Of a stretch of DNA of 64,000 bases, positions 13,752 to 63,055 are shown in pieces. The notes beneath the pieces are model-generated. The model saw only the letters and a list, made by a program, of their open reading frames with translations. It was not told the origin of the DNA and did not search any database. The stretch's first letter is position 1, and each line of letters starts with the position of its first letter. Location: assembly GCF_037042905.1 (NCBI RefSeq), contig NC_087258.1, positions 558,001 through 622,000 of the forward strand, given 5' to 3'. Source of the stretch: Lytechinus pictus. Its lineage: Eukaryota. The translations under genes and the position numbers were made by a program.

Positions 13752-13961
13752 TTACTTAGCTAAAGGAACATATCTGTCATCGTGATCATAAGTAGATGAT
13801 CTATAGTCATTGAGATCGTACGACTCGATGTCGTTGATGTACGATTCCTTCCCTCTGATATTACGAGCACTGTTCAGCCTTCGAGCCTCCTGACCATCGA
13901 CCACAGGATGAGCATAAAAGATTTCCTCGTCTTTCTCACGATGATGCCATGGTATAATATC
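13752..13961 (-). CDS. Gene D terminal exon: Tyr-rich cytoplasmic tail
   Basis: ttactcag acceptor; DIIPWHHREKDEEIFYAHP...ESYINDIESYDLNDYRSSTYDHDDRYVPLAK-TAA; the early PW matches the gene C tail. Confidence 0.72.
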   Translation of the reverse strand, partial: DIIPWHHREKDEEIFYAHPVVDGQEARRLNSARNIRGKESYINDIESYDLNDYRSSTYDHDDRYVPLAK

Positions 13962-15212
13962 CTGAGTAACCAGAACAAAATAGTAGTAAAAGTCGGGATA
14001 TATAATGAGGGAGGGGGGGGGGGCAGAGAGAAAGAGAGAGGGGGCGGGTTAAGAAAAGGATATCCGGGAAAGGGGGCGTGGAGAGTGATGGCGGTATCTC
14101 TCAACATGGCCTGCTCCCCACTCGTGTCAAACACGAGTAAGAAGCGCATCTTTCATGGCGAAATATGTCAACGTAAATTGTACACGAAAGAAATCCACAC
14201 TTTCTTATAGCTAAGTTTAGTTATGTCAACTAGAAATCCCTAATCCTAAGTGGAGTATACAGTGAAAATAGACTAATAAGATAACCGACCAATATATATC
14301 CTGATCTAAAACAAACCAACAAACCAAACGAGTTTGCACTACACAACCAGATTACCTCAGATTGCTCATTAAAACATTGATTTTGAATGATAATGTGGTT
14401 AATGAAGAAGAGTTAGATTGCACATATAAATGGCGTGACGAGTGAGACGCGCTAAAATTAAATAGTTGCTGAGGAACAAAGCAAACCGTTTCCAAAAGAC
14501 GTCTTGGCTGCCTGAAACGGTACACATTCGACGCTTTTTTTTTGCGGACGCTGATGGGTAGCATACCATGTGGAGAAAGAGATTCATAACGCCGTTCAGA
14601 AAAAAAGAAAAGACTCGTCAAGAGATCTCTGGGGCATACTTATTAAAAATAGTGTTAACTTTCAGGCTAGTAGGTACGTAGGTGAATGAATATTCACCTG
14701 TCCCTCGACTCCCTCGTCAGTTGTGACGCCTACGTCCTGCTTCGGGCCGGGTCTCCTTCCACTGGTTACGTTTGTTGGCCTTCGACTACATCTATCGACT
14801 ATGTTGCTTCCGCAAACCAGGATCACGCAAGCCGCTAGGAGTAACGCCCCCGTACATGATCCAACGACAATGGTTATCAACTTCCAATTATCTAGAGAAG
14901 GCAGGAGAATGAAGACGAAAAAAAAAATAGATTAGCTTTTCCACTAATAATAACCGAAGTAGTTGCAATGAAAAGGAGGATAATGTGAAATTTGCAAATA
15001 ATAACATTTCTATCTATATACATGTAAATAATTCCATATGATCAATAAATAATTATCAAAATACTGGCGTTTGCGGGGTGTATGACGATGGGGGTCTGTT
15101 TAAATATGCGGGGCAACAAAATTAAACAAGCATATATCTGAGGACAAATGTATGCTCTCGTTACACAAGCAATGTCGAGTGATGAATTGATAATTTAAAT
15201 GCAGAATTCCGT

Positions 15213-15250
<38 letters not shown>

Positions 15251-18200
15251 GGATTCGGGGATAGTATAATACATTTTCATATTGTATTTCGGTTCCATGA
15301 TATTTGCTCCGGCGACAATCTCTCCGATGGAAAATATGCACGTTGAGCCATGCATGAAATCTTAAACCTCCGAGACTAAATAGACTCTTATCTTTACATT
15401 TTTCTAAAAATAAAATAAATAAACCCTCTATCACAATCCTAACTATAACCCTATACACCCTCTGAGAAGACCATGGGAGCGTTTCATCAAATGACTTGTC
15501 AGACGTTTTATCCGACAAGTCCCATTTTATCCGACAGTTACCATAGTAACAGTGCTTCTCAGCCAATCAAAATCCAGAAAAGTTGTCAGATCTGACAACT
15601 TGTCGGACAAAAATGTTGATGAAACGCCCCCCCCCCCTGATCAAATGTCCCAGGAGCAAATGTCGTGTCATATGTATTACAAATGTTGAATATGCACACA
15701 TTTTTAATGAGATTGTGATCTCTGTGGTATAATCGAATAATTATGTAGTCATACAATACAACATTTAGTATTTCAAGAAGGTGAAAAAAGCTTACATGCT
15801 GCACAGTTTCTACCGTCATAACCCTCGGGTGAATTATCAGCGTAACCATCCCAGCATTGACACGTAAATGATTTCTCAGCTAGATCTTTACAATCAGCGT
15901 GATGGGAGCAGTCGTCTAAGCCAAGTTTACATTCATCAGTGGCTGCAAATCAATTTGAAAGATTAAAATAGTTTAGTATGTCCAAAGCACGACGGCGGTG
16001 ATGGAGTTAGGGTACACAAAAAGTCAGATTCAGAATCAACATATTAGTATCAGAATCAGTTTTCTTAATCAAAGTTGCTGATTTAGGGGAAGAATGACAT
16101 AAGATCGTCTTCATAATCCGAATCCGATTCGGAACCTTATTAATCAAAACCACTATCACCCTAAGCGGTAATAGAATACTATTTCAAAATTAAGTGAGAG
16201 TCAGCGTCGCATCCAGAGTTGGAGACGGATCTACAATACTAAATTAAACAAGTTATACCATTTTAAGCAACAAAAAAAAAACATGATAAAAAACATACAG
16301 GCCCTGGGTGCCATATCGATTCCGATTCATGGTCAGTGAAAGGAAAATGCAAAGCGAAGAAAGAGAATGCAAAAAACAAATAAATCTACTATATATATAC
16401 GATTTTTTAACTTACGTGTGACAGACGTTTCGTTTGGATTAATTGTGAAATTAGAATTGGTAACTTGAAAGAGATCAGCCGTCATTACAGCATCGAGAAT
16501 ACTCTGCATCTCTACTCCTGTTGTATTAGTGAATCCCAGTCTGATATCAGCTATGATGCTCCCTGCACTAAAGCTAATAGCCGAACAGGATTTAAACCCA
16601 CTAACAATATCATCCAGTAATGCCGTTACCTGAAAGGCAAATGAAAAGGAATATTTTGAAAAATAAGTGAATTGAATAAAAAGAAAATGATATGGTTAAT
16701 CCAAGCCTGGGTTAATCTGACGAAGATGAACGCAAAATATTGATGGTACTTTAGGGGCGTAATCAGTCGACAATTTTGAGAGGGCGAAATATGGCGTATC
16801 GGAAAAAAAAATCATACAAGTTGCGAGAGGGCAACGCGATCGAGCAAAATGGTTTAACATTTTTATTACAAAAATCAAATTTTTTGATAGATTTTGATAT
16901 AATATTCATAAAATTATATCAAATTTCACCCTTCTCCCTTTCCTTTTTTTTTTTTACCTCGCTAGCGAGAAATGGGGTGGGGTGGGGAAAGAGCCCAAAA
17001 GACCCCTATCTGTACGCCACCGATCGATACTGGTGATGATGATGATGATGAAGAAGAAGATGAGGATGAAGGATGATGATGATGGATGATGATGATGGAA
17101 ACGATCATGATTTTCGTTCTTGTTATTGATGACGTGATCATGATTTTCCAATATAGGGGGCATTTTTTGTCCGAAAATTCTGACAAGATTAAAGAAAGGT
17201 CTTCACTACTTTTGCGTATGTATGACATTTTCCACTATATATATTTCTATATTTGATTTATTGTGTATATTGCTCTCAAGGATTCGCTACTGGTTGTGGT
17301 GGTACTGGTGATGAAGATGGTGTTACTGATGATGACTAGGAGAAAAGCAAAAAACATCAGAGAAGGAGCGAGAGCTGCATGGGACAGCATAAATGATGAC
17401 AAAACGATTAAACATAAAATTTTTCATGTATTAATATATAGATCAATTTCGAAGGGGGTGTAGGAGCTTTGGACAAATACTGGGAGGGCACTTACATTAT
17501 ACGAGCTGATGGAATTCTAAATGGTAAACAATTGTTCTGCAACTTCTACTTCAATGAAGTACTCGGGAATTCAATATTTGAATAAATCGAATGAAACCTT
17601 TTCCAGCTTACCGCCGTGCAAACAGTCAACTGCAATGTATTGAAAGCATCACTCCCAGTCGATTGAAGTTCGCTTGTAAAAATAGCAGTATCACCATCAA
17701 TCTCTAGTATGGTCATACTTATAGTGTAGTATGTTGTAGCTGAAACATGAATTATTTAAACAAAATATTAAGATAAGAAACTACCATTGCCACTGTGTTA
17801 TCATAACCAACGAAACTTGAAGAACATTTGATATCCAGGTAAACTGGACGCGGAGTGACATATCGGTTCAATAGAAATACTTGTTTGAAAAAAAAACCCA
17901 CCCCCGGAAAAAGTGGTGATATTCAGTCCCTACAACTTTTTAATTTACCGACAGTAAATGCATTTATTACAGAAACCCATCTAATGCCTATACTAAGTAT
18001 ACGAACGGTATTATTATTTTAATATTATGAACATACGGAATCGTCAGCACTCCACCAATTCTGCCTCCCCGTGGAAAAAAACGCTGTATCTACATTTTGC
18101 ACAGGTTAAGAATAAAGCATTTAATTTTTTTTTTTCAAAGCCGCTCAAAAGTATTTAATTTCTCGGTACTATTTTATCATCAAATTGTGCCTATTTCAGG

Positions 18201-21200
18201 CCACTCCAAAAAAATATTGTTGTTAAAAAAAAAATGAAGAAATGCTTTGGGGAAAGTCGAAGTGGATGCTCGGTTTCCCCATGGAAAAACATGAAAAACG
18301 CAGTATCTAAAGATTGAAAATCTGAAAAATTGAAATAAAAGAGAATTCCATTCAGATTATTTTCGTTTAGTCATTCTATATTTCTTCAATACTATGGAAT
18401 AATATATCAATATGTAATTCAAGGTAAAATAATATCTTAGAAACACAAAGGGCGCCTTCTACAAACAAAGGCGTCCTCTGTGGCAAAGTCCCTCAAAGTG
18501 GTAAAAAATTACACAAAACATTCATGTAAAGTTTGTAATTAATAATTTTCCTAATATAAGTTGCTGTGTATATATATTTTAACTCTGCGTTTTTACTTAG
18601 ATTTCAATGTAATACTACATAGAAAAAAACCGGGGCGACCTCTAAAAAATATGGCCCCCAGCCTCTGTAGTAAAATTCCAACCTTCAAGAGAAAATTTTC
18701 ATGAAGTCTGGGACTATACCACAGAGGGCGCCCTTGTAGGAAGATGGCGCCCTTCATGTTTCTAAGCTATTATTTCCCCTTAAATCACATATTGATACAA
18801 CATTTTTTTGGTAGTAAAGCAATATCGACTGAGTAAGTTATGATAAAAGTGAATTCAAATAACATGCTCTTCATTTGTAGATACTGTGTATATCCATGGG
18901 GAAACTGAGCATTCCCTTCAAATCTACAATTACGTCAATACCTAAAAATACAACAACAACAACAACATCATTTGTTCGGATTTTGGGGCCCTAAAATAGG
19001 CGCATATATAATGCACAATATGATGATAAAGGAACACTTGAAAAATAAAATAGTTTCTAGCGGCTTTGAAATAATAAAATAAAAATGCTCAATATCTCAG
19101 TGTAGATACTGCATTTTGCAGTACTGAAAAGTGGCTTTCCCAAAAGAATTTCTGAAAACTGGATGTGTCATCCGCAAAGGAATGGTATACTAACTACTTT
19201 TTTTGAAAAAAAAGCGAACATTGAAAATCATGTCCGATACTGCGTTTTTCTGATGGGGAGGGGGGGGGGGGCAGAATACACATACTTTACATACTTTACA
19301 CCTGTAGCCATATACACGTACTTTTACCTTGTCTATTATGATTTATGTAGGCCTACCCTTTTCTTAGGAAAAAAAATAGAGAATAACATGATAAAGAAAA
19401 CATTGGAATTGAGAAATCTTCATGATAATGACATGAACTTTTTCCAAGAAAAGCAAAAGAAAAAAAAAAGTTTTTTATTTATTTATTCATATTTTTAATA
19501 ATTAAATAATTTTTACCCGACAAATGGAAATAATAATACATGCTCACGTTCACAAGTCGATTCTCCATACGGTCTTTCGGAACCTTCTCGGCATATACAT
19601 GTTGTATCTACACAAATCTCTCTATCTACTTCACACTGACCATTGCAAGGATCTTCCACAGCTAAGGGTGGAAATGTTGAGAAAAATGAGAGAACATCAA
19701 AAAGCTGATAATGATAATAGAAATAACAATGTTTATAGATACCTCAATGGCACCATGATCCACTTATAATTTTAATGATAACTCAGACTTCAAGTCTGGG
19801 TAAAACTTTGTTACGATTGTGTTTACTTATACGTATGCAACGTTCTTCTAAAGTTTTCATTTGTACCAAGTAAGAATATTACTCACGAGAAGTAGTTTTC
19901 ATTGGAGTCACTTTTGCCTCAGTAGGCATTTGGCCTGTGGACGTTTTGCTTGGTTCCGTTACGGCATTGGTTGTAATGATTGTGAGGTCTCTTGTAGTAG
20001 CATCTTCTGTCACGTCTGTCACAGTTGTCAGTCCCTCGTTTGGTTCCTGGCTAACTTCATCAGAAATACCCATAGACACGGTTTTTATCATTGCTGTGGA
20101 TATTTCTTCTATCGGTGCTTTTGTACCTTCCGGTTGATCCGTGGTCATGATATCCTCTGTTAACATTGGTGTGAATGTTCCTGCAGATGAGGATGTGCTC
20201 AATGGATCCGATGATATTGATGTGCCTAATTCAGAAGTCATTGCTTGCATTGTTGTCACGCTAGTCTCTGAACTCGAAATAGTATTTGTTGATAGTTCTT
20301 CTGTAGATATTGTGGAACCATCTGTATGGCCTCCAGAAGTTATTTTGTATGCATTCGTAGCCTGGCTAGTCCAATCTGAAAGTGTGCTGGATGTGACAAG
20401 AGTTCCTGTCGACACGGTGATATGTTGTTCGGTTTTTGTTTGCTCGGATCCCAACGTTCCCGTGGTTGGAATATGGGTTTCATCGAGATTTGCTGAGGCG
20501 GATGTTGAAATAGTCTCTGTCGGTAAGATATCCACGGTTGGTGCAAATGTTTGTCCACTTTGTTGATCTGTTCCTTGTGTTAGAGTACCATCAGTCTGTG
20601 TACCTGAAGTATATCCTGTTGTTTGGATGCCTTCAGTCGAGATTGTCGCTTCACCTGTGATGTCAGTAGTTAAATCAGTAGCACCAATTAGCGTGATGCC
20701 TTCGGTTTGGAGAGTAGCTGATGAAACAATGTTATCCTCAGTTGGTTCATTTAGAGCATCAGTTACAGTACTCCTGCCGGTTTGTTCAGTAAGCACGGAA
20801 GCAGTTGTAACTTTTATTGGATTTGTAATGATGACTGCACTACTAGCTGTCACACCGACAACTGTACTGCTGCTGTCAGTTCGATCCAGGAAATCATTTG
20901 TAGTACTGCGTTCAGAACGATCTGTTGTTGCAGAAAATGCACTGACCGTCGTCATCAGCGATGTAGATTCTGAAACAATTGTGCTGTCAGTTTCATGTGT
21001 AAAAACAGTGCTGCCTTCAGTTAATTCCAAGGTAGGTGAGCCAGGGGTATCTTCCGTGGTCTGTCCGGAAATGGCAGTCATCGGTTCAGTTGTCGTTTTA
21101 ATCTCACTAACATAGGTTGTTAATAACAGTATGGATGTTAACAAATCCGAAATGGGGGCCACATCTGTTGGTGTTAGAGATTCTGCTGTTGTTGGATTTT

Positions 21201-23247
21201 CGGTAGAGCTTGACCTTCCTGATACTGGTTCCGTTTCTGCAATAGCAGTTGTAGTAACATATGTGGTGCCATCATGGGATGTTGCGACAGCTGATAAAGG
21301 ATTACTGGTTGCTGATCGCGAAGTTGTAGCTATTGTCTGTCGGCTGGTTGTTGGTGGTACTGTCCGAATTCCTACATGACAATTTATAAGAGAGATTGAA
21401 AGAGAGAGATAAATGAGATAGATAGATATATAGATAGATCGATGAACTCTTATGAAACTTGATCTGAATCAGACCCAGACTAGTATAGTTTTTAGATTAA
21501 TTCATTGAACATGGTCATCCCATAATACTCTTTGTGTATACATAATAATGTTAATGTTAAGTATCTTACCAGAACAAGACGGGTTAGCTGAGGTTGGTGG
21601 TGGATTCCAGACGCCATTTTCACAAAATGCCTGATTTGGACCAAGCAAGTCATTAGTTCCATCGACACACTCATACGTCACACCGGAGCCGTGTTCATAA
21701 CTATCCTGATCTGGGTCGTATGTGACGTCATGATATACTCCTGGTCGCTCGCAGTTACCTTTAAGAAAATGGACAGGGAAAGTGAGAGGGGGATAGAGAG
21801 AGTGAGAGTGTGCGAGAGGGGATGGGAGAGAGAGAGAAAGAAAGACGGAAAGAGAGAAGGTTGAGACGCGATTAGAATAGTTAAAACCAGAATAATATAT
21901 TGTAACCTAATATTAGGCAGACATTATTCGATTGACATTCAACTGGGAATAGAGGTTCCCTATTCATGACAAAAATTCACAAAAAAAATAATGAATCGGA
22001 AGAGAGGGCGGATCACCTCAACTAAATCAGTATTGGTAAGTGGAGACCTTCTTCAATTCATCCTCAACTTTTCTTGTTTCATGCTGGCAAATTATCTCTC
22101 AAAATACAAATTACCTAAAACCAAAACAAAACAGGGATGTACATGGAAGAGTGAAAATGAGAGATGCCTTAAGATTGAGAAAAAACAAAACAAAACAAAA
22201 CACAAATAAAAGAAAGTAATAAACAAGGGGAAAAACAAAAAATACAGTAATAAATGAATATGTGTGTACTGCGAATGAAGCATGGGGATATCGCTGTCAT
22301 GTCCGAATACTTCATGTTATTTATATACTCACTGTAACAGATGAGTGGAGATGGCTCCCAGGCTCCGTTCATACACAAACTAGTAGGTGATCCAGCTCCC
22401 GATGAACCGGGTTCACACGTCATTTCTATGGTTGTGAACTCCTCATACTCGGTATAATCGGGAATAAAGTTAGTAGACGCATACTGGTCTTCTGAAGGTT
22501 TCTGGCACACTACAAGACAAATTATTATAATATACATTGATAACCCTTGTTCGGGGACTATAGCAGTCCGTTTCAATGTCAGAAAAAATTGTTAACAATA
22601 TTCACTGTAAAAAAATGAAGCGCTAATTTAGCACTTACACTGCTTGCATAGTGACTGCACTACGAGTGCTGATTTTCTTGTTCAAATTTAAACTAGAAAA
22701 TCAGCACTCGTAGTGCAGTCACTATACAAGCACTGTAATTGCTAAATTAGCACTACATTTTTTACAGTGTAACTTCTTTAGTATAATGTTTTTGTATGTC
22801 CAATCTGTACTNNNNNNNNNNNNNNNNNNNNNNNNNNNNNNNNNNNNNNNNNNNNNNNNNNNNNNNNNNNNNNNNNNNNNNNNNNNNNNNNNNNNNNNNN
22901 NNNNNNNNNNNNNNNNNNNNNNNNNNNNNNNNNNNNNNNNNNNNNNNNNNNNNNNNNNNNNNNNNNTACTTCTGATACGGTCGTCATTGTTTTTATATCA
23001 TTATCACCATCACCACAACTACCACAATCATCATCACCATCATCATCACCACCACCATTCTTGTTATTAGAAATATAATGTTATTCTTATCCTTTTCAAA
23101 ACCTCATTAAGATTTAATAAAAACAACAATTATCATAAAATGCCATTCATTCATTCTGGTACCTGAATAGACTCCAGATGGCCGATGTAAGATAATGATT
23201 CCAAGGACCATGATAGCTGCACGTTTTCTCCACCCGAGATGTGTCAT
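13752..23247 (-). CDS. Gene D: membrane mucin, SP-CCP-CCP-Thr-rich stalk-EGF-SEA-EGF-TM-Tyr-rich tail; about 980 aa
   Basis: Exons 23247-23163, 22509-22333, 21758-21570, 21371-19887, 19661-19548, 17739-17612, 16629-16416, 15942-15796, 14891-14698, 13961-13752. All GT-AG and phase-compatible. Confidence 0.85.
14698..14891 (-). CDS. Gene D exon: TM helix
   Basis: WKLITIVVGSCTGALLLAACVILVCG; phase 1-0; CAG/gtgaat donor. Confidence 0.87.
15290..15670. mobile_element. CGGTTCCATGA-ended repeat carrying a nested MITE (15475-15631)
   Basis: TTTGCTCCGG / GGAGCAAATGTC subrepeats on both sides of the MITE. Confidence 0.65.
15796..15942 (-). CDS. Gene D exon: calcium-binding-type EGF domain
   Basis: TDECKLGLDDCSHHADCKDLAEKSFTCQCWDGYADNSPEGYDGRNCAA; paralogous to the gene A EGF exon. 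Confidence 0.88.
16416..16629 (-). CDS. Gene D exon: SEA second half with FSAGSII motif
   Basis: 214 nt, phase 0-1. Confidence 0.85.
17612..17739 (-). CDS. Gene D exon: SEA first half
   Basis: TTYYTISMTILEIDGDTAIFTSELQSTGSDAFNTLQLTVCTA; 128 nt. Confidence 0.85.
18068..19259. mobile_element. Degenerate foldback/palindromic element in a gene D intron
   Basis: Nested inverted matches, e.g. GCTCGGTTTCCCCATGGA (about 18268) / TCCATGGGGAAACTGAGC (about 18893) and CTTAGAAACACAAAGGGCGCC / GGCGCCCTTCATGTTTCTAAG. Confidence 0.7.
19548..19661 (-). CDS. Gene D exon: short EGF-like domain
   Basis: DPCNGQCEVDREICVDTTCICREGSERPYGESTCE; 6 Cys with CxC; 114 nt. Confidence 0.8.
19887..21371 (-). CDS. Gene D exon: 495-codon Thr/Ser-rich mucin stalk
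   Basis: ORF 19879-21162 extends to acceptor catgtag at 21372; donor gtgagt at 19886. Confidence 0.9.
21570..21758 (-). CDS. Gene D exon: CCP2
   Basis: NCERP...YEHGSGVTYECVDGTNDLLGPNQAFCENGVWNPPPTSANPSCS; 189 nt. Confidence 0.87.
22333..22509 (-). CDS. Gene D exon: CCP1
   Basis: CQKP...YEEFTTIEMTCEPGSSGAGSPTSLCMNGAWEPSPLICY; 177 nt. Confidence 0.87.
22603..22769. mobile_element. Palindromic CACTG-ended MITE (EnSpm/CMC-like)
   Basis: CACTGTAAAAAA...TTTTTTACAGTG; almost fully self-complementary. Confidence 0.8.
22812..22966. other. N run (gap or masked microsatellite)
   Basis: Ns flanked by TACT. Confidence 0.95.
23163..23247 (-). CDS. Gene D exon: signal peptide
   Basis: MTHLGWRKRAAIMVLGIIILHRPSGVYS with n, h and c regions; CAG/gtacca donor, phase 1; acceptor catcgcag at 23277-23278. 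Confidence 0.62.
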
Positions 23248-45108: not shown

Positions 45109-45311
45109 CTAGGTGCACACAACCTTCCGATCGGGTAGCCATTTTCCTTTAACACATCTCTGCGTGGTTGGTCCAACCAATACCTTTCCAGTAGGACAAG
45201 AGTTACTAATGACGGCATTGAATCGGGAAATCTTCGCATCTCCTTCAACGCTCGTCTTCCGTAGAGGGCGTGACTCGACCAATGCGTCGTGGGCTGGGAG
45301 ATGGCAGTTCT
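45109..45311 (-). CDS. Gene B terminal exon: basic CCP4 plus stop
   Basis: NCHLP...SCPTGKVLVGPTTQRCVKGKWLPDRKVVCT-TAG. Confidence 0.82.
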
Positions 45312-48300: not shown

Positions 48301-49765
48301 CAACGTGACTGTATCCACCATCACATGAGAATGTGATTTTTGACCAAAGCGGGTAAGATGTTTCGCTGGGAGAAGTGATGACGTTGGATAACGTTACTGG
48401 TAGTCCACATTCTGAAAAAGGCAATTTCAAAATTAGGAAGTAAAAAGTTACATTTTATCCTTTCCACATTTTGCAGGAAATTGTAAAGAAAACAGGTAAC
48501 CACTTCAAACAAGGTTCTACTACATACGTGCTGCGCTAATGTATTTTTTTAAGAAGAGGCGGGAGGGGGGGGGGGGTAGAGGCTGCACGCCAACCTAAAC
48601 TTTATGTTTAAATATTTATATCTCTCTCAAAATGTATCTAACATAAAAATCCAGAGGTCTCTGCTGCTGCTACTACTGATATGACTAACGTTCTAATTCT
48701 ATCATCAAACAAATTTGTTCATTTCATTGTAACCTGTCATTTAAATACCAATAAGTTGTCAGGGAATGGTTTCTGTCAAGTTTGCCGTCAAAACAATGGA
48801 ATACCTTTGATTCAACTTTAGCGAGTAAAATGTTATCAGGGACCTTCCAGGTAAGGTTTAACTTAAATTATCAAGAATCATAGTGTTTCATAAACTTTCA
48901 AAAAAAGTTTATTTCAGTAAAGCTTTTGTTCATGGACCCGGGTTCGGTGTTAATTGTGTTAAAAGGATCTGAATTTTAATGAGCAGAGAAAACAATTCTT
49001 TCATGGGCAAATAATATACAAACGAAATGAGTTAAGAAGAATTATGAAAATCCTTAATAAACAAATAAAAATTATCCTGATGTAACAAAAATATTATATC
49101 ATTGCAATTATTGAGACGAACTGCTTTCTTCCTGCATGTCCTATAACATGTGGAAAGACATTTTTGTTTAGTTTGTACTGATTATGTGTAAGATAAGATG
49201 GTACTTCTGTACTACGCCAAAGAATTTCACCTTATTCCACCCAATTATGTCCCTCTCCCCTTAACAAATTCTATATATATATAAAAAACCACATACATTC
49301 GGGAAAAATAATGAATAAAATAGGCATCGTTACATTGTTACTCATATAATATCGCCATGACAAATCTGTAGAAAATGAACATTGATTTGATTGGAAGCAT
49401 TAATTTAAATGTTATTCATGCGGATGTTTTAGGACAATAGTGAACAGTAACCCTTTGCTCAGTATACATTGTCATTTTCAATTATCGAATATATTGATAA
49501 TACCAGGGTATGGAAAGCCTGTGAATGAAACTTGGTCAATTTAGATTTTAAAAAATGAAGAAGCCCATGTGTAAAGGCATTTGCAATACTACCCCAAGCA
49601 AGCAAAATTATCGTGTTTGAATCAAGTACAGACTACATTCTACGGGATATTTTTATTTTTTTAAATAAATACAACCAATTATAGATTCGCAAAGTTCTTA
49701 CCTGGTACAGGCGATCCCAAAGCGATTGAAAGAGTGAAGAATGTGATAAATAGATTGAGCTCCAT
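45109..49765 (-). CDS. Gene B: secreted protein of signal peptide plus four Sushi/CCP domains, 280 aa
   Basis: Exons 49765-49702, 48411-48232, 47039-46836, 46364-46173, 45311-45109. ACCATGG start context; TAG follows one residue after the last Cys; no TM or GPI segment. Confidence 0.8.
46173..46364 (-). CDS. Gene B exon: CCP3
   Basis: CTPP...YATNDEVILSCSDDVRYTAVGTNVTYCKENGEWIPDPTKMMCR; 192 nt. Confidence 0.85.
46836..47039 (-). CDS. Gene B exon: CCP2
   Basis: NCAEP...YNHEDVIQYACAEGISANLVGPNEATCENGLWVPAAMPSCN; 204 nt. Confidence 0.88.
47608..48133. mobile_element. Degenerate TTAA-type non-autonomous element
   Basis: Ends ATGTTCTGGGCTGA / TCAGCCCGGAGCAT; body resembles the 11 kb family. Confidence 0.5.
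48232..48411 (-). CDS. Gene B exon: CCP1
   Basis: ECGLP...YPLWSKITFSCDGGYSHVGSQYSYCMEGGVWDPSPDNAICM; 180 nt. Confidence 0.88.
49702..49765 (-). CDS. Gene B exon: signal peptide
   Basis: MELNLFITFFTLSIALGSPVP; donor CAG/gtaaga; phase 1. Confidence 0.75.
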
Positions 49766-52344: not shown

Positions 52345-52431
52345 TCATAATGCTGTATCCTCGACAGAGTCTGCTGTTGACTCGTCAATTGATTCGTTAA
52401 AAGACGTGTAGTAGCCGCGATATGCCTCCAA
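52345..52431 (-). CDS. Gene A terminal exon: cytoplasmic tail ending DTAL
   Basis: tttag acceptor, phase 0; LEAYRGYYTSFNESIDESTADSVEDTAL-TGA. An N gap lies in the preceding intron. Confidence 0.7.
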   Translation of the reverse strand: MEAYRGYYTSFNESIDESTADSVEDTAL

Positions 52432-55400
52432 CTAAATGAAGAAAGAATGCAGAGGAAAGTAGAGAGTGGGCAGGGAAGGGGAATAAAACGGTAGCAATTA
52501 CATCATTAATCATGTTTTTGAAAAATTATAACATCAACAATTTCACTAATGATATTAATAAAAAAAATATAAAATTAACAAAAAAGCACTATTCATACTA
52601 CTACTACTANNNNNNNNNNNNNNNNNNNNNNNNNNNNNNNNNNNNNNNNNNNNNNNNNNNNNNNNNNNNNNNNNNNNNNNNNNNNNNNNNNNNNNNNNNN
52701 NNNNNNNNNNNNNNNNNNNNNNNNNNNNNNNNNNNNNNNNNNNNNTACTACTAATACTACTACAAATTATAACAACAATAATAATAATAATATGAATGTC
52801 TTTTATTACTTTCCCCAATATTAATGATCAAAGGATTTCGTATGCTTAATTACTTGACATTAAATATTTTACAACGTTTGGTTTAGTGAGCCCAAACTGC
52901 AGTTTTTACCTTTTCCTTGTTATCTTTTGGTACAACTATCGTATCTTCTGGGTGTGTTATCTTTCTTCTGCTTGTTTTCCTGATTACACAGAAAAGTGAC
53001 ACTAGCAGAATAATAATGATAGCGCCACCAACCGCCGAAACAGCTATTAAAATCCATGTTGCTGAAAGAAATGACAATGGGCAACCAGAAATTCAAATAA
53101 GTAAAACAAAAGAGACTATACGAAGTGATATTAGACAATAAAATGTCGAATGATAGAAATAATCCGTGGACAAGGTTTTTTTTCCTTTTTTTTTTGTTAT
53201 CTTGTTTTACAGGTGTTAAACTGCCTAGTTCTTATCATTTCAATACCCCATGCTCTTTTACTAAATCTTGTAACGATGATTTTGTAGATACACGTATTTA
53301 CGTTTTGACTGAAAGTCATGCATATCTTGTGACTTTAGGCTTTAAGCTTTTTATGATTTTTTAAGGTAAAGAGATCTTTTAAACCTTACATGCTTTTAGC
53401 TAAAGGATTAATCAGCGTAAGAGTTGTTTTAGGATGAATGGATAGAATAAATTCTTTGCTGATTTCGGTATTTCTCTTTTTTTAATATAAGCGAGTATTA
53501 CCTATAGTTGGAGTGTTTCTATTCGCCTCTTCGCTAGTCGTTGGAGTTGTAGCCGTTATAATTTCTAAACAAATCAAAATATAATAAAAGGAAATATAAA
53601 AAATACATCGAAATCTGAAATTACTTTAAATAGGACATAATCTCATATTTCACCTTTGATAACACGTAATCTTTGGAATGAGTCCCTCAGGGAGGATTGA
53701 GTTTAAAGAACGGTTTGAATAAAATGTGATATTCTTGAAGTATAATGATTGATATGCATTATACTCCAGAAGGCCTGCTGAAATCGGTTTTTTTTCTTTC
53801 AGAGTTGAATTGGTCATATTAAAAAGCAAACTTATCGATTGAATAAAAAACAGTGGAAATATCAGAATAGTTTTTCAATTATTTCAAGAGGAACAAAAAG
53901 TACAGTAATGGTGTATTCGTTAAAAAGACTCAAATGTAACCATTTTCATGTGACAGACATACATTCAATACGAGTCATCTTAGTATGTATAAGTAATAAC
54001 AGTAATAAGATGAAGTGAAATGCATATTTTATTGTTTTAGGACATACCTATCGTACACAGCAAACCAGGTGTGATAGACGTTGAACTATACCCTTCGATA
54101 CATGTGCAGTTAAAGCCACCCTCGTCCAGATCAGAACATGTCGCAAACGGAGAACAATCATCTATTCCTAATGAGCATTCGTTCGTTGCTGAATGATAGA
54201 AAATCAATGGCAAAACATGATAATAGAAGTTAACAATTAATAATCAATTACGAATAAAGAAATTTCCATGGAAAATATTGGGGGCGTCTTGGTCTAGTGG
54301 TCAAGACTCTCGTCCTTTAATCTGATGGACTTGGGTTCGATTCCAAACCATGACGTGTTTTCCTTCAGCAAGAAATTTGCCCACATTGTGCTGCACTCAA
54401 GCCAGGTGAGATAAATGGGTACCGGCAGGAAGTAATTCCTAAAATAATCTGTGCGCACCGGAATTGATAGACTACATGTAGCTTAGCTGGGGTAATATAG
54501 GAACGCCTTGAGCACATATCAAGGTGGATACGTGCGCAATACAAGTCATATATAATTTATTATCATTGAAACTCGTTGTGAATAAATAATATATGATTCA
54601 AATGAGTTATACTTACGATGACATTAAAATCGGCATGGGAATGACAGTTTAAGACATGCCGATTTTAATGTCATCGTAAGTATAACTCATTTTATTATCA
54701 AGGTTTATAGAAACAATATCAATAATATCATAAGGGGATTTCTGGCTTAGAAATGTTTATTTATTTTGGATTGGATGTGCCAAGAAATTCGGTGAATTAT
54801 TTGTTTGAGGGTGCTATATCCTTGGCCAGGCTATTTCCGAGCAATAACTCATTAATTATCAAAATCGTTTTAATTATCATATCCATCGTGTTCATATACT
54901 TACGTTCAACAACGATGGAACTTGCGTCTAGCGTATATGAGGAGTTATTGTTGATTATGAATCTATTGGATTCCGTGACATTATTAATATGATTTGACAG
55001 ACTATCATTGGTGACGGGCGAGCTTTGTTCAAAGTAAACCACAGATATAGTGATAATGCTTCCAGACTGGAAAGAGAATACTTCTGATCCAAGAAAGCTC
55101 GTCATCCCCTCAAACACAGAATTTATCTGAATACAGACAAGATGATGAAGCATTTTACAAAAGCAATTCAAATGTTGAATACTAATGATAATGATGTTCA
55201 GATGTTTACGAGGGATCGATTGAATTCACAATTATTTTCGGCGAACATTCTCCTATAATGCTCACATTTCTTTTAAAAGGATCGTAAAATTCTATTGATT
55301 GCAAAATTACTGATATCCCACCTTACCGACTTGACAAGATCTGTTTGAAGAAGTTGATAGGCTGAACTCTCTTTATCGCGAAGGTCGTTGGTGTAAAGGG

Positions 55401-58400
55401 CTTGATCATTATCGATTAAAAATATTCTGAACGTAAAGGTGAATGATCTTGTACCTGCAGAAATGATAATGAATACAACTTGAACAAATGCTTTCAATCC
55501 GAATATTAATTATGAAGAAAGAAAAGTTAGATAAGAGAGCTTGATTGATAAGCTTTTAAACACTACCAATAATGATCTTTCACACCCAGTAAGAAAACGA
55601 ACAAGGGAAAGATGAGTGCTGACTAAAGACAAATGGCTTCCTTATCAATAACATTAATAACTTGAAATAATATTTTGTTTCATATTCTATACACCATGAG
55701 ATATCATTGCATTTGCTTCTTCTAAACTGCATATATCTTCCACTCCCGATATGTTAAATTTCAATCACCTGAACATTGATTGTTGACGTGCGTTCGGTAG
55801 GTACTAGGTCGGCATTCACATCGTCCTTCTACGCAGGTCTCCGTTTCTTGATTACAGCTCTCACAAGGCTCTGAAATGTGACGTTTAATTATTATGTCAA
55901 TAAGTTATTTTAATAGGCCAGCAAAACCATGTGGAGAATACTATAATCTTCATAATGGTAAACGTCAAAGGGAAATCCATGCACGAACACAATGCAGGAA
56001 TTGTGAAGGGTATTATGGGAACCTTTGCATTATTGTTTTGATGTCAGACGTATTGGAAGGACGTTATTGACTTGCAGTAAGGACACAATTTCATTCATAA
56101 TTTGATAAAAAACTTTATATCATATGCCTACTCTACAACAAGAATATACATTTAAACAATGTAATAAGAATATGTAAGATTCAAATTGGATTTGAATATG
56201 TTTGCATTCACATACCCTTGGTACGAGTGTGAGTGGTAGGATTCTGTTCCGTTGCTTCAGTTGTGGTTGTTGACGCATGAGCATCTTCGGTTTGGGTTGT
56301 GTGAACTGATATACTCGTAATCTCAAGCGACGCTCCTTCCGAGTAGGTGGTAGACTCGTCAGTCACCATTCCTTGATTTTTAGTTTCTGTAAAAGCATTT
56401 TCTGTCACATGTATATCAGAAGGTGTTTCCAATGATTCGGTATAAGCACTGGAAAGATCATCTGTTAAGAAACCACGAGTTTCCTGAAACGTCGTAGATT
56501 TCACGGCGCCACTGGTGATAGGCGTTGTGTATATCGCCTCTGCGTAGGTTAGTGTTGAAACAGGTGGGAAGTCAGTATTTGATGTCATAGGGGAAGACTC
56601 TGACGTGGTATGCCCTGTTGTAGTTTCCATTGTTGAAGCATATGTAGGGGAAGTTATAAGGGCTGAGTATCCTGTTGTAGTGTATTCACCTACCGTCTGC
56701 TCTGCCTCGGTGGTGCCAAAATATGAAAACGACTGGTCGGTGCTTGATGGTTTCGATGTTGTTGAGAAAGTCATATCTGACGTCACGTATTCTTCTGGAA
56801 TTACCTTTCTAGTCGTTGGATGCATATCGTCTGCAGTTGGTGTTATCATGAGTGTCGTAAGATAATTTCTTGGTTTAGATGTTGATGAATCTGTCGTACT
56901 TTCATCTTTTATGGTCAAGGCCTGTGAGGAAAAATCATCTTCTGTTTGCAATACCCCTTCAGTGCTCTTCCAGGTAGTTACGTCTTGTAGTTTAGTCGTT
57001 GATTTATCTGTGAGAGGATTAAGCGTGGAAACTGCCCCAGAGGATATTGCACCAGAACTGTATTCTGTTGAAGTTATTGTCTTTAAGGTTGTCGTTTCAT
57101 CTGTTATAATGTTTATTGGAGTTGCGGTACTCGAAAATGGAAAATCACTACCTGTTTTTTTATCACTGATTTGACTGGTCCCAAGTTTTTCAGGAGACCT
57201 GCTCGCAAATGTTTCAGTTTCAAAAACAGCCCCCTCTGTTGATGCTGTCCTTGACAAAATGGCTAATTCTGATGTTGAATATTCGTCTGAAGTAAAACTA
57301 TCTTGAACAGTTGTGGCAGTATTATCACTCATTTTTATAGTGGACGTCATATCTTCGGTTTCAACAGTTGCCTGGTTCTGTGTTACCGTCCTGGCTGAAT
57401 CGGTTTGAAAGACTTCATCCGTATGATAACCGATAGTAAACGGTAGGGATGAGTATTCTGTACTAAGCAGATTCGTCGCTGTCGTTTCGTCTGCACCAAA
57501 ATCTCTCCTAGTTGTGATTATCGATTCTTTATTTTCGGTAGTTTCATCGAAATCAGTAACCATGTAGGTAGAGGTTGAGATAACACCTATATCGTAATTT
57601 GTAAGTGTTGGAGAGGTTTTCCAAACTGGTGTCTGTTGGGTAGTAAGTTGATCGTCAATGATCGAATCAGAGGTAGTTTGTGGATCAGTTTCCCAAACGG
57701 TCCCCGCGACTGTGGATTGACTTGGTGTTGACTCGGATCCAGGCAATGTAGTTAAATCTCGTACAGTTTGTTCAATGCCATATGTCGTGATCCCTTCATC
57801 CGTGCTGGTTATAGTTACATCAACAAGTGTGTATATCCCCTGTGTAGCTCCAGTGCCTTCTGATGTAGAGAAAGATGGCACATGCTGTGCAATAGTACTC
57901 ATTAGGTATTGCCCATCAGAGGTTGTATCTGAAGTGATGAGGGTGGCAGTCACAGACTGTTCAGGCTCGCTGACATCGGAAGGTCTTGATGGCACGTCTA
58001 TATATTCTGATGTGATGGAAATTGTACTGCCTGATCTTGAATTTCCATTTGTAGGATTTACATCGGTTGGTTTCAGATCCATTGTTTTGCTGTTTACTGA
58101 ATACGTGGGTGTTGGAAATGTTCCAACACTGGTCAATACACTACCACTTGAAATCAATGCAGACGATGTCATTTCCGTTGCCTTTGTTGCATGAAATGTT
58201 GATGAAAAATCCTCGGTCTTGTCATATCCTTCCGTATTATATGACACAGCATCTTCTGAAGAAGTAGATGAGACAGCAGAAGTAGTGGCATCTGATGGAT
58301 GGGAAGTTGTAATTATAGCTGTGTCATGTGGTTGCGTAGGCAAATGAGAAGCTTCTTGTGAAGTCGGCCTCTGTTGCGGGGAAACGTCGAAATAAGTCGT

Positions 58401-61400
58401 AGAACTGAAGCCTGTGGGTGACAAAGATGGATCGATCGGCATTTCACTCCAATATGTTGTCTGTGTTATTTGTGTAGTATCGCCTATCATGTCTGTTGAG
58501 ATCATGTGTGTTACATCTGTAGTATCCGATTCTGTATCTGATGAGATATTCTCTGTTATTTCTATGGTATCGGTTGTTTGGTATATTGATGTTATCTGTG
58601 TAATGCCTGTGCTCTCTGCTATCCTGTCCATTAATGTCGTCTTTAGCACTTCTGTGGTATCAACCATTTGACTTCCTGATGTTACATGTTCCATGTTTGT
58701 GTGATCATTTATCTTGTTTGTTGTCATATTGTCTGTCACCCCTGGATTATAATTTGCTTCTTCAGGTGCTGTCATCGGTGTTATTTTTGTGGTATCAGAT
58801 ACCTTGTCTACCAATGTTGTCTGCGTCATTTCTGTGGGATCAGCTTTTTCTTCTGTTGGTCTGCTCTGTGCTGTTTGTGTAGTAACACCTTCCGTAATGG
58901 TTAACATCGCCTTTGTTATGTCTGTGGCAAGAGCTCTGTCATCTGTTGATGTCATCTGTATCACTCTTGTTGTATCATATATCGTGTCTTTTGATGTTGT
59001 CTGTGTCATTTCTGTGCAAGCAGCTATTTCATCGGTTGTGGTTGTCTGTTTCATTTCTGTAGTTTCACCTTCCGTAACGGATACTGTCGCCTCGGTCATT
59101 TCTGCGGTATAAGCTCTGTCATCTGTTGATGTCGTTTGTATTATTGTTTTCGTGGTATCAGAAATCCTGACTGTCAATGTTGTCTGTGTCATTTCTGTAG
59201 TATCAGGTATTTCGTCTGTTGATGTCGTTTGTGATTCAACCGTGGTATCATCTTTCGTAAAGGTTAGTATCGTATGTGCCATTTTCGTAGTATCAGTTTC
59301 GACATCCGTTGATGCCATCGGTGTCATTTCTGTTTTATCAGATATCGTGTTAATTATTGTTGACCGTGTCATTTCTGTGCTACCAGCTATTTCGTCGGCC
59401 GGTGTGGACTGTGCTATCTCTGTAGTATGTCCGTCCTGAACAGTTGATCTCGTCTGTTCGATTTCTGTGGTATGAGCTCTTTCTTCTGTTGATGGTGTCT
59501 CTATTTTCTTTGTAGTATCAGTTAATGTGTCTAATGATACCGTCTGTGACATATCTTTAGAATAGGCCATTTCATTTATTGTTGTCATTTGTATATTTTT
59601 TGTAGTATCAGATACCATATTTGTTGGCATCGTCTGTGTGGTTTCCATGGTATCATAAGTTGGTAAATCTGTTGTTCTCCGTGTCATTTCTGTGGTCACA
59701 TCTTCTATGTCTGTTGATTTCGTCTGTGTTCTTTCTGTACCATCAGCCAAATCATCTGTTTCCATCTGTGTTAACTGTGTTGCTCGAGTCGCTTTATCTG
59801 TTGATGATGTAAGTGTACCTTCTGTATCAATTGTAATATGTGATGTAACAAATGTATTTGTTGTAATATCCCTTGTATTATCTGTTAATGTTGTCAGTAC
59901 CATTTCGGTCGTATCAGTTATTGAATCTGTAGTCATCTGCTTAATCTGTGTGGTCTCAGCAGTTTTATCTGGTGATGTTGTTTGTTCCGTTGATGTGCGA
60001 TCAGTCATCTCATCTATTAATGTTGTCCCAATCATATATGTCGTGTCAGCAGCAGTATTTGTCGATATCGTCGTAAGCAAATTTTCAGTAGTCCCAGCTG
60101 TGGGTGTAGTTTGCTTTTCTGATAATACAACCAAATACAATCAAATAACGTTTTGATTTGTCTACCTTTTGAACTTAAGGACGTTCCACAGTTATGTTTG
60201 TGCGCATTATGATCTGCGCATAGTTTACACTCTGCGCGCTGACGTCACAATGGATGAACAGGTGATTAATTAGCTGCGGGTATGAGCTGATTTTTCTCAT
60301 CTTCTGCACTTTAACTGCAGATCCGATGTGTTATTTCATGAAGCTAAAAAGTGGAATTATTCCATGGACGATTAAAAAAAATTCTCTACAATTTCAAAAT
60401 ACTTTACTCTCCAGTGCTGCCAAGAATCACGAATATTACCCCGAGTTTGAATAAATGGTAGAGTGGTTTTGATTTTTTCTTCACATAGATACAAAGTATT
60501 CGGTGCATTTTTGGTGTTTTAAAAAGCACATTTGCTCTAATAAAAATGCTGATAGTTTAAAAACAAGCACATGAACCTCTATTTTTTAATGTTTGTACCT
60601 CTTAGGTATACCTTCCTTTACAATTCTGCAAATTTTGGTGAAAATGACATGGATTTTGAATAAAGTGCAGCATTTTTTGTACGTTTGTAGTTTGTTACTG
60701 AAATTTCACATTTTTTAGATTGGGATTTTGTTATCTTTTACGCCATTTTTAAGAACTGGCAGTGCTGTTAAACTTAAAATTGCAAACAAATAGCACTATA
60801 AATAGATTCTAAATTCTAACGATACAATTATTAACTCTCTTGCGAAATTTGGTGACTTTTTCATGTATTTTGACTGAGTAATAAAGGTTTAAACTCATTG
60901 TAGTAATCTTAGGCGGTCTAAAAATGCCAAATTCTTTTCAATGCGCAATTTTTAAGAACATCAATTTAGGTGAACTTTGAAGCTCTATAGCAAAAAATCA
61001 AGCACATGGACCTATGTTAATTTTTGCATATTTCGAATATTAAGGTTCCAAAGTATCTATGTGCAAAGTTTGGTGAAAATGACATGGATTTCACTTTAAC
61101 TGTGGAACGTCCTTAAATTAGTAAAGATATCATCTAATTATCAAAATGTACAGAAGTGAAAAGTCAAATAATACTTGGAACAAGATGACTGATCAATTGG
61201 ATGAGTTTATGTTCACGTGTTACCAGAAAGATGCAATTTACAGGGCATTTGAGACTAAGATTCACATAAGAAAGGTAATTTTTAATCTTCATTGATCATA
61301 TTTTAACATTAGCCGATGGAAATACCGTCATGATTGGGAATTAACCCAGGTAGCCCAGGGGCTTACCGTGTATTTGACCATAGTCACCGGACTAGGGTGA

Positions 61401-63055
61401 TTTATGGTCTAAATATTTCTCCGACTGAATTGTGAAAACAGAAATTATGCACTTACCACAAATCTATGGATGAAGGTCTAACGAGTGGCAGTATCCTGAC
61501 ATCGAGGCACGGACTGGAACTTCAAAAAACCGAAAAGTTCTGTCGCGATACCTCTCTTAATTCTTTCAAAATTCATTGCAAAATGGCCGATCGAGACTGG
61601 TGGAAGGAGAGCTACCGCGACAGAACTTTTCGTGTTTTTTTTGGAGGTTCCAGTCTGTGCCTCGATGTCAGGATACTGCCACTCGTTAGACCTTCATCCA
61701 TAGAATCGTGGTAAGTGCATAATTTCTGTTTTCACAATTCAGTCGGAGAAATATTTAGACCATAAATCACCCTAGTCCGGTGACTATACACGGTAAGCCC
61801 CTGGGCTCCCTGGGTTAGATTGGGAATTTGACTTAATAATTATCAATAATAATAAATGTGATTTCTAAGGTGCCAAATCCATTTATATCTAAATTCTCAA
61901 TGCGCCAAGGTGAAACGAGAGAGAGAGAAAAAAAAAATCGTATATTTTATAATTATGCAGAGTTAATCAAATGAGTTATTGGTTTTACAGTATACAGGAT
62001 ATTGGTCACCAGTTGCGCTTTACTATCTTTGGAAGAAATAATATCGCTATGAACTATCACCCTGATACAAATAAAAGTATATTTGTACATAATTAGTACA
62101 AGGAATTTCTCTTTGTCTTTATTGCCAATCTGGTTAAGTTCATATCAAGTTTATATCGATGTTCCCGAAGAACGCGATGGCATATGCTTACCTAAACAGA
62201 TAGGCTCCCCCTCCGGTAGCAAATCACCTTGATTGCATATGAGCTCAGTGGGTCCATCAATCACATAGCCTTCCTCTCTGCATGATAGAGTGAAGACGGT
62301 ACTGTCCGGGTACCAGGCATTTTCAAGAGGCTCGTTTGAAGAATCAAAGTCGATAGCCTCATGAAGATCAGGAACATCACATGGCTCTATTAAAACAAGA
62401 AGAAGTAACGTACAATTGTTTACAGATGCGTATACGCCCAGAGTATACTACGAATGTTTTACCGAAAACAAAATATCACCATCGTCTTAGCGTGTAAAAA
62501 AGTCCATATTTAAGATTAATGACTATATGGACATGATCTGTATCCATTTATCGCGCTACTTTCCGCGACATTGTCATTAACTCGAAGGGATGCTATTTAC
62601 AAAGAGTGTAATTGGTCTGTAGGCTTCTCATATATTTTTTTCAATATTGGTTGCCAAGGGTAATAACTTCAATGATGTATGACTATACGAGCGGAACCTA
62701 TTCTAACTCACGAGACTTTATTTTGATCACGTATTGAAAACAAAAACAAATTGTCGGGAGGTAACCGGCGTAAGAAGACACAAGACCCGATCCCAGTTCT
62801 ATGAATGTTTATTCACTCACCTGAAACCAGAAGTGATTCAGCATCAAGGGTGAACCGGAGAGATAGCCCATTGATATTCGGATTCTGACCTAAGATGCGG
62901 TCACTCTCGGCCCTGACACTGTCGAGAGTAGTAGAGGCTGACGTTTTTAGTACGAACACGACCGCGGAGACGTCTATTCCATGTGTATCCGGTTGTGAGA
63001 GTGACACTATCTTTGAAAGCAGGTAACCGTCCAACATTTCGAAAATACTCCCTAT
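52345..63055 (-). CDS. Gene A (5' end outside window): membrane mucin, ...SEA-CCP-Thr-rich stalk-SEA-EGF-TM-tail; at least 1708 aa in window
   Basis: Exons 63055-62821, 62386-62192, 60118-56216, 55454-55327, 55126-54904, 54188-54048, 53564-53502, 53061-52910, 52431-52345. All GT-AG, phases compatible, open frame ending EDTAL-stop. Confidence 0.85.
52610..52745. other. N run within a (TAC)n microsatellite
   Basis: Ns flanked by TAC repeats. Confidence 0.95.
52910..53061 (-). CDS. Gene A exon: transmembrane helix and basic stop-transfer
   Basis: WILIAVSAVGGAIIIILLVSLFCVI-RKTSRRK; phase 1-0. Confidence 0.88.
53502..53564 (-). CDS. Gene A exon: short Thr-rich juxtamembrane linker
   Basis: EIITATTPTTSEEANRNTPTI; 63 nt; phase 1-1; tttag acceptor, gtaata donor. 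Confidence 0.65.
54048..54188 (-). CDS. Gene A exon: calcium-binding-type EGF domain
   Basis: TNECSLGIDDCSPFATCSDLDEGGFNCTCIEGYSSTSITPGLLCT; 6 Cys; 141 nt; phase 1-1. Confidence 0.88.
54281..54568 (+). mobile_element. tRNA-derived SINE
   Basis: A-box TGGTCTAGTGG, B-box GGTTCGATTCC, body, AT-rich tail. Confidence 0.75.
54600..54692. repeat. Perfect 38-bp inverted repeat with 17-nt loop
   Basis: AAATGAGTTATACTTACGATGACATTAAAATCGGCATG and its exact reverse complement. Confidence 0.9.
54904..55126 (-). CDS. Gene A exon: SEA domain second half with FQSGSII motif
   Basis: 223 nt, phase 0-1, canonical splice sites. Confidence 0.85.
55327..55454 (-). CDS. Gene A exon: SEA domain first half
   Basis: GTRSFTFTFRIFLIDNDQALYTNDLRDKESSAYQLLQTDLVKS; 128 nt; SEA-like YxxxLxxxxSxxY pattern. 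Confidence 0.85.
56216..60118 (-). CDS. Gene A exon: 1301-codon Thr/Ser-rich acidic mucin stalk
   Basis: ORF 56208-60140; acceptor tatcag at 60119-60120, donor gtatgt at 56215; 3903 nt, phase 1-1. Confidence 0.92.
60179..61112. mobile_element. Non-autonomous TTAA-flanked element (Kolobok-like)
   Basis: TTAA-GGACGTTCCACAGTTA...TAACTGTGGAACGTCC-TTAA; perfect 16-bp TIR. Confidence 0.82.
61342..61817. mobile_element. Young foldback MITE with 10-bp TSD (Mutator-like)
   Basis: About 215-bp near-perfect inverted arms; GATTGGGAAT duplicated at 61332-61341 and 61818-61827. Confidence 0.88.
62192..62386 (-). CDS. Gene A exon: Sushi/CCP domain (conserved Trp replaced by Leu)
   Basis: EPCDVP...WYPDSTVFTLSCREEGYVIDGPTELICNQGDLLPEGEPICL; 4 Cys; 195 nt; phase 1-1. 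Confidence 0.8.
62821..63055 (-). CDS. Gene A exon: second half of an upstream SEA-like domain
   Basis: IGSIFEMLDGYLLSKIVSLS...FTLDAESLLVS parallels INSVFEGMTSFLGSEVFSF...YTLDASSIVVE of the downstream SEA exon; phase 0-1; tttag acceptor, gtgagt donor. Confidence 0.75.

Follow-up and report, generated by a model that had tools for sequence, protein, structure and literature searches.

A stretch of 64,000 nucleotides from the genome of the sea urchin Lytechinus pictus (assembly GCF_037042905.1, contig NC_087258.1, positions 558,001 to 622,000; hereafter the window, in whose own numbering all positions are given) carries four gene models on its minus strand, g1 to g4, with no internal stops and with GT..AG at every junction. 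Three of them, g1, g3 and g4, place N-terminal complement control protein (CCP, or Sushi) domains on a long Thr/Ser-rich stalk, followed by a SEA domain with a GSII motif, optional EGF domains and a transmembrane helix, while the embedded g2 encodes a secreted protein with four CCPs. g1, g2, g3 and g4 are a real, expressed and conserved gene family. They probably constitute a tandem family of type I membrane mucin-like glycoproteins, so far seen only in sea urchins, and are best described as SEA-type membrane mucin-like proteins with a CCP-pair head, accompanied by a secreted head-only paralogue.

Four genes of one exon design

The models were built from stop-to-stop open reading frames and a scan for frame-compatible GT..AG pairs, and were then refined by hand. 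A single phase pattern is common to all genes: CCP, stalk (PTS), EGF and mini exons are in phase 1-1, the first SEA exon is 1-0, the second 0-1, the transmembrane exon 1-0 and the tail exon 0-stop. By inspection, the N-terminal exons are hydrophobic, and g1, g3 and g4 each have a single helix of 20-23 residues followed by basic residues. An earlier sequence-only reading of this DNA had proposed four same-strand genes with common exon types and phases, a first SEA exon of 128 nucleotides in its genes A, C and D, the CCP-stalk-SEA-transmembrane layout, heads displayed at different heights and an embedded soluble CCP-only paralogue. All of this is borne out by the models: frames are uninterrupted and splice sites canonical throughout, the 128-nucleotide length is exact in g1 (55454-55327), g3 (34340-34213) and g4 (17739-17612), these same three genes have the full layout with stalks of greatly different length, and g2 lies within the cluster.

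g4 spans 23247 to 13752 on the minus strand, as do all exons below, and encodes 980 amino acids. A signal peptide (exon 23163-23247) is followed by two CCPs (22333-22509 and 21570-21758), a 495-residue stalk held in one exon of 495 codons (19887-21371), a first EGF (19548-19661), the two SEA exons (the 128-nucleotide exon 17612-17739, and 16416-16629 with FSAG|SIIA), a second EGF of the calcium-binding type (15796-15942), the transmembrane exon (14698-14891) and a cytoplasmic tail exon (13752-13961) that includes the stop codon and ends in ...DRYVPLAK.

RNA evidence was drawn from four runs; the public run X1 comes from the same species and shows about 1% letter differences from the window. 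One X1 contig of 3703 nucleotides aligns over its positions 414-2512 without gaps to 22511-22331, 21756-21569, 21370-19887, 19661-19548 and 17739-17608, and each stretch it skips is bounded by CT..AC as read on the plus strand, or GT..AG in the direction of the gene. The contig joins CCP1, CCP2, stalk, EGF1 and the first SEA exon of g4 exactly at the predicted sites. It continues for 413 nucleotides upstream, comprising the signal-peptide exon and 5' untranslated region, and for 1191 nucleotides downstream, a length that fits the remaining 765 coding nucleotides of g4 plus a 3' untranslated region. The splicing of CCP exons to stalk and SEA exons, which the sequence-only reading presupposed, is thereby shown for g4; the transcript was not found in the other three runs. 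The predicted proteins agree with this structure, as the L. pictus model P0062 ('mucin-2-like', 977 amino acids) is 98-100% identical to g4 and has the same joins. Orthologues are present in Strongylocentrotus purpuratus (P0017, XP_011671279, 965 amino acids, with Sushi, SEA and EGF) and Lytechinus variegatus (P0063, 980 amino acids). An S. purpuratus isoform X2 (P0057) is without 45 residues that P0017 has in a repetitive part of the stalk, not in an EGF exon, a difference due either to variable repeat length or to a cryptic intron within the exon that encodes the stalk.

An assembly gap at 22812-22966 falls inside intron 1 of g4, where the X1 contig skips 22512-22790 and the RefSeq protein is continuous across the junction. 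Directly beside this gap, the summed short-contig depth at 22620-22790 reaches about 300-2200 in all four RNA runs, and this piece of the intron looks like a repeat or transposon fragment.

g3 spans 40658 to 30928 and encodes 1192 amino acids in an uninterrupted frame. Its exons specify a signal peptide (40580-40658), two CCPs (39361-39546 and 38583-38789), a main stalk exon of 665 codons (35583-37577), a second stalk exon of 62 residues (34928-35113), a SEA domain without EGF (the 128-nucleotide exon 34213-34340, and 32976-33201 with FTSG|SIIA), a short exon ahead of the membrane (32429-32497), the transmembrane segment (31744-31925) and an acidic cytoplasmic tail with the stop codon (30928-31248).

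g1 spans 63055 to 52345 within the window, where it is 5'-incomplete. The sequence-only reading had let its gene A (g1) start at 63055, a claim that does not hold, as the exon found there (62821-63055, phase 0-1) encodes the latter half of an additional SEA-like domain, one that has no GS site. It is followed by a CCP exon (62192-62386, phase 1-1) that has 67% identity with CCP6 in the S. purpuratus orthologue, a single stalk exon of 1301 codons (56216-60118; Thr 25%, Ser 11%, Asp+Glu 15%), a first EGF (55769-55870), the two SEA exons (the 128-nucleotide exon 55327-55454, and 54904-55126 with FQSG|SIIT), a second EGF of the calcium-binding type (54048-54188), a short Thr-rich exon ahead of the membrane (53502-53564), the transmembrane exon (52910-53061) and a last coding exon (52345-52431) that ends in ...SVEDTAL-stop, the form of a class I PDZ ligand.

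The missing part of g1 can be read from its S. purpuratus orthologue (P0006/P0055, XP_030843424.1, 2102/2103 amino acids, named 'mucin-3A', with Sushi, SEA and EGF). This protein begins with a signal peptide and five CCPs, the third and fourth of which are separated by a short Thr-rich linker, continues with the GS-less SEA-like domain (second exon corresponding to 63055-62821) and a sixth CCP (62386-62192), and ends with a stalk of about 1240 amino acids, EGF, SEA with GSII, EGF, transmembrane segment and tail. Because it aligns to the window from residue 415 onward only, the 5' third of g1 lies beyond position 64000, with some 414 orthologue residues, including five CCPs, falling past the window end. 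A second assembly gap (52610-52745) sits in the intron between the g1 transmembrane exon and the last exon. It is flanked by orthologue residues 2073 and 2076 with no break in residues across it, and the intron measures about 480 nucleotides, matching its S. purpuratus length. Neither this gap nor that in g4 is expected to contain coding sequence.

g2 spans 49765 to 45109 and encodes 280 amino acids, the length of the L. variegatus model. A signal-peptide exon (49702-49765) is followed by a distal-type CCP1 (48232-48411), a proximal-type CCP2 (46836-47039), CCP3 (46173-46364) and CCP4 with the stop codon (45109-45311), without stalk, SEA or transmembrane segment.

Heads, stalks and the SEA base

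The CCPs of the cluster fall into two types by pairwise identity. First CCPs of g4, g3 and g2 form a distal type (27-42% mutual identity), their second CCPs a proximal type (40-42%), and the third and fourth CCPs of g2 resemble these types more weakly (31-34% and 25-30%). Since the g2 CCPs pair with the distal and proximal types, g2 is plausibly a doubled CCP-pair head, as far as the sequences tell. Five CCP exons exceed the Pfam Sushi cut-off and the two of g4 fall just short of it. The g4 CCP pair is modelled by AlphaFold with a predicted local distance difference test (pLDDT) of 93.6. The model matches CCP pairs of factor H (CCP19-20), CD46, C4BP, C2/factor B and C6.

The stalks comprise 1301 residues in g1, 665+62 in g3 and 495 in g4. 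Their exons contain about 25% Thr and 11-18% Ser (37-44% together, with 37-39% in the single exons of 495-1301 codons), only 4-6% Pro, and 13-15% Asp+Glu, the last falling to 7% in the short second stalk exon of g3.

At the base, the exon-by-exon Pfam search missed SEA, as two exons each encode only a part of the domain. Scored on the spliced domains of RefSeq proteins that match the window, SEA reaches 31.0, 28.3 and 34.3 bits (cut-off 26.4). An AlphaFold model of EGF-SEA-EGF (pLDDT 75.7) has the beta-alpha-beta-beta-alpha-beta fold of a SEA domain, and Foldseek ranks the SEA domains of TMPRSS6, MUC16 and TMPRSS11D first among the PDB matches of the SEA model. The second EGF passes Pfam EGF_3 and has calcium-binding-type residues; EGFs flank SEA on both sides in g1 and g4, while g3 has SEA alone. 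All eight sequences compared, which come from four urchin species, have the motif F-x-x-G-S-I unchanged, and the model places it in the beta2-beta3 turn, where the closest solved sequence, the SEA domain of ADGRF1, has NGSIVA. It is in this turn that MUC1-type SEA domains self-cleave (PMC9578598, the source also for the force-sensor idea and for the PDZ motif of the MUC3 cluster). The invariant F..G|SI motif in this turn makes the predicted self-cleavage and shedding plausible. Of the earlier proposal that heads are shed at the SEA site, the cleavage motif is present in the right place, and release itself is a plausible consequence.

Conservation and relatives

The order g2-g3-g4 is kept on one L. 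variegatus chromosome (adjacent loci L001 and L002), while no g2 orthologue was found adjoining S. purpuratus g1 within 10 kb. Selection was estimated per exon between L. pictus and L. variegatus as the ratio of nonsynonymous to synonymous substitution rates (dN/dS), with small counts for each exon. Values are 0.03-0.12 for the EGF exons, 0.03-0.26 for the transmembrane and tail exons, 0.08-0.34 for the CCP exons of the mucins, 0.27-0.76 for those of g2 and a relaxed 0.53-0.71 for the main stalk exons. On these ratios, all exons evolve as coding sequence and the folded exons are under purifying selection. Positive selection on the CCP heads was looked for in the same comparison and not found, again on small per-exon counts.

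The tails rank among the most constrained parts. In line with the earlier suggestion of different signalling tails, those of g1, g3 and g4 are mutually unrelated and each is conserved. The g1 tail ends in -SVEDTAL, that of S. purpuratus in -DTAL and that of a Diadema orthologue in -NTEL; the g4 tail has a conserved terminal YxxPhi motif (YVPL, YVPI, YTQV); and the g3 tail is acidic and contains Tyr. The C-termini of g3 and g4 are unlike the class I PDZ form of g1. On the heads, the Diadema models are uninformative because they start inside the stalk.

Closest in fold to the entire EGF-SEA-EGF module is the S. purpuratus 63 kDa sperm flagellar membrane protein (Q07929), likewise a membrane glycoprotein of this animal group, and the protein that gave the SEA domain its 'S'. 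Its residues 36-251 align to residues 1-202 of the EGF-SEA-EGF model (TM-score 0.64, E 1e-11), but at 23% identity and with 470 amino acids it leaves no room for a CCP pair and a stalk of 500-1300 residues. The juxtamembrane or matrix modules of C. elegans MUP-4, IMPG1/IMPG2, UMODL1 and HEG1 are also alike by fold (ranks 2-11 and 25-29), while their N-terminal parts differ and do not combine a CCP pair with a mucin stalk.

In overall layout, the cluster resembles the vertebrate MUC3A/3B-MUC12-MUC17 cluster and MUC13: a type I orientation, a stalk in one giant exon, the order EGF-SEA(G|S)-EGF-TM (transmembrane), a tandem arrangement, poorly conserved stalks beside conserved ends and, in g1, a class I PDZ-type C-terminus. 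The urchin stalks differ in being Pro-poor and barely repetitive, and g1 adds an uncleavable SEA and six CCPs; we know of no vertebrate SEA membrane mucin with CCP heads. A protein language model groups g4 with clusters of MUC13, MUC3A, HEG and IMPG2, and by fold EGF-SEA-EGF places MUC13 at ranks 14-15 (14-15% identity) and MUC3B at 24. A SEA half-profile reaches vertebrate MUC1-type SEA repeats. The sequence profile of EGF-SEA-EGF-TM-tail, by comparison, found only urchin (Diadema) proteins in the MUC13 size range, and for this reason no sequence link to MUC13 emerges. Orthology with the vertebrate mucins was considered and set aside, given the urchin-only profile and the fold ranks of MUC13, and the relation appears to be one at the level of domains only.

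CD46 and CD55 share with the urchin proteins N-terminal CCPs, a Ser/Thr-rich stalk and a membrane anchor, and CD46 is among the CCP fold matches. They themselves combine four CCPs with a stalk only tens of residues long, lack SEA and EGF, and are defined in function by C3b/C4b binding. A run of about four contiguous CCPs, as in the regulators of complement activation, is found in g2 only; g3 and g4 have two, and the six of g1 are split by a linker and the SEA-like domain.

Among 43 scanned proteins with a related SEA half-domain, SEA was recognized in 33 and Sushi was not among the families seen in at least two; within this set and the orthologues, the Sushi+SEA combination occurs in urchin orthologues only. 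Literature searches, including searches by accession, found no papers on CCP-headed SEA mucins or on these accessions. The earlier statement that no characterized family joins both layouts thus seems to stand for the literature searched, with the qualification that the proteins already exist as RefSeq predictions under names taken from other proteins ('mucin-2-like', 'mucin-3A', 'serine-rich adhesin for platelets-like', 'cell wall protein RBR3-like') and that their EGF-SEA-EGF-TM base is widely reused. Invertebrate SEA mucin-like proteins are not new in themselves, because 'mucin1-like' proteins with signal peptide, PTS, SEA and transmembrane segment have been reported in a sea anemone (PMC9080433). 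A hyalin-like protein of the crinoid Anneissia japonica (P0012, 1317 amino acids), with eight HYR and three SEA domains, represents another mucin-type use of SEA in echinoderms.

Elsewhere in the window, a low-complexity repeat at 1860-2400 is open in all six frames. The L. variegatus gene downstream of g4 (L002:30555-34039) encodes a UbiE/COQ5-type methyltransferase, and its DNA can be aligned to the window at about 7070 and below; by this synteny, a methyltransferase gene is placed below about 7000 on the minus strand.

Role, alternative readings and significance

Several observations weigh against the description of the cluster as a family of CCP-headed membrane mucins. Direct RNA evidence covers g4 alone, in one contig of depth 2.3 whose alignment ends at the first SEA exon. 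g1 is incomplete within the window, and NCBI annotations split g3 into two models. The stalks, poor in Pro (4-6%) and with one weak 180-nucleotide repeat, are unlike classical mucin repeats. Finally, at the transmembrane/tail junction of g4 the model departs by three residues from RefSeq, whose L. pictus and L. variegatus proteins have ...GVTTDDTQDIIPWHH, while both genomes, at the sole GT..AG pair, give ...GVTTDEGVEGQDIIPWHH. No DTQ micro-exon was found in this intron (window 13962-14697; L002:22690-23860), and the RefSeq version would require a non-canonical intron.

If the cluster encodes CCP-headed membrane mucins, the stalk would be densely O-glycosylated and would hold the CCP pair roughly 100-300 nm above the membrane. 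SEA would self-cleave in the endoplasmic reticulum into two non-covalently held chains, and a pulling force could part these chains and release head and stalk. The tails may link the proteins to different intracellular partners, through the PDZ-ligand -TAL in g1, the YxxPhi motif in g4 and the acidic, Tyr-rich sequence in g3. As two secreted CCP pairs, g2 could be a soluble binder of the ligand of the membrane-bound heads. Most likely, the membrane forms would be apical glycocalyx or barrier proteins with a second function as sensors of adhesion or of a ligand.

An extended reading, which we regard as speculative and unlikely, derives the urchin cluster and vertebrate MUC3/12/17-MUC13 from one deuterostome membrane mucin with CCP heads that were lost in vertebrates, and sees the heads and g2 as a sheddable receptor-and-decoy pair. 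Giant stalk exon, EGF-SEA(G|S)-EGF-TM cassette and PDZ-ligand tail would all have been in place in this putative ancestor.

A function in complement regulation or immune recognition, as entertained by the sequence-only reading, would have the heads bind urchin C3 fragments or microbes, with membrane forms that protect self or signal and with g2 as a fluid-phase regulator. Sea urchins possess C3 and factor B homologues, the CCP-pair model matches factor H CCP19-20, CD46, C4BP and C2/factor B best, the architecture of CCPs, Ser/Thr stalk and anchor recalls CD46 and CD55, and the four CCPs of g2 are a number typical of regulators. However, CCP structures in the PDB come mostly from complement proteins, and any CCP pair should give matches of this kind, so those obtained, at 17-28% identity in Foldseek, speak for nothing beyond the fold. 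Both g3 and g4, as membrane forms, have just two CCPs, fewer than known regulators. A domain specific to complement is absent, and no expression data tie the genes to immune cells. In addition, the heads, with dN/dS of 0.08-0.34, are under purifying selection and show no sign of an arms race. Complement modulation thus finds no support here, and we consider this function very unlikely.

It is likewise very doubtful that the genes encode gamete or cell-adhesion proteins akin to the 63-kDa sperm flagellar protein, whose CCP heads would mediate sperm-egg or cell-cell binding by analogy to the CCP protein ZP3R in mouse. Q07929 is indeed the best Swiss-Prot structural match of EGF-SEA-EGF, followed by the adhesion receptor MUP-4, and the occurrence of g4 RNA in one of four runs fits restricted expression. 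Against this stand the low identity of Q07929, its insufficient length for comparable heads and stalk, and the conservation of the heads, which do not evolve fast as gamete-recognition proteins usually do.

It is also very improbable that g3, and perhaps g1, consists of two genes, one for a secreted protein of CCPs and stalk with its C-terminus just past the second stalk exon and one for a separate SEA-transmembrane protein. The annotation of L. variegatus suggests this arrangement, as its P0001 (813 amino acids) corresponds to the 5' part of g3 and has a C-terminus that is a read-through of the donor past the second stalk exon, with a separate 302-residue SEA-transmembrane model next in line; g3 RNA in the runs (at most 13% of sampled words) is too thin to decide. 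Yet the 302-residue model begins at a Met within SEA strand 1, without a signal peptide, while the newer L. pictus model P0059 (XP_054768722.2) fits the g3 exons at 100% identity and joins stalk, second stalk exon, SEA, mini exon, transmembrane segment and tail. The full 1192-residue frame, furthermore, has the same phases as the RNA-verified g4, and an early-ending g3 isoform could exist beside the full-length form. Because P0059 joins at the predicted sites and the frame is unbroken, g3 is very probably one gene.

Three further observations concern g3. A search with its stalk open reading frame returned a single match, the L. variegatus orthologue. Read-through of the donor after the second stalk exon (34869-34927) gives a short hydrophobic end and a stop, in L. 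variegatus as well, so that an intron-retaining secreted CCP-stalk isoform is possible. A further L. pictus model, P0060 (XP_054768723.1, LOC129276367, 287 amino acids), is 91-100% identical per exon to the SEA-transmembrane-tail part of g3 with a different C-terminus, and probably stems from haplotype duplication in an older assembly, since the window has one copy only.

Taken together, the corrected models of this family of CCP-headed membrane mucin-like proteins are useful in themselves, because the database names mislead and at least one gene has been split by annotation. Membrane mucins with a self-cleaving SEA domain have been studied almost only in vertebrates, where they are not known to carry a folded recognition head. 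Here, one base bears a defined CCP pair on stalks of three greatly differing lengths, with a soluble copy of the head in the same cluster. Given the easy embryology and the transparent larvae of the animal, this would provide a natural system for investigating what a mucin stalk and a SEA break-point contribute beneath a receptor head, and the cluster also bears on the time at which SEA-type membrane mucins originated.

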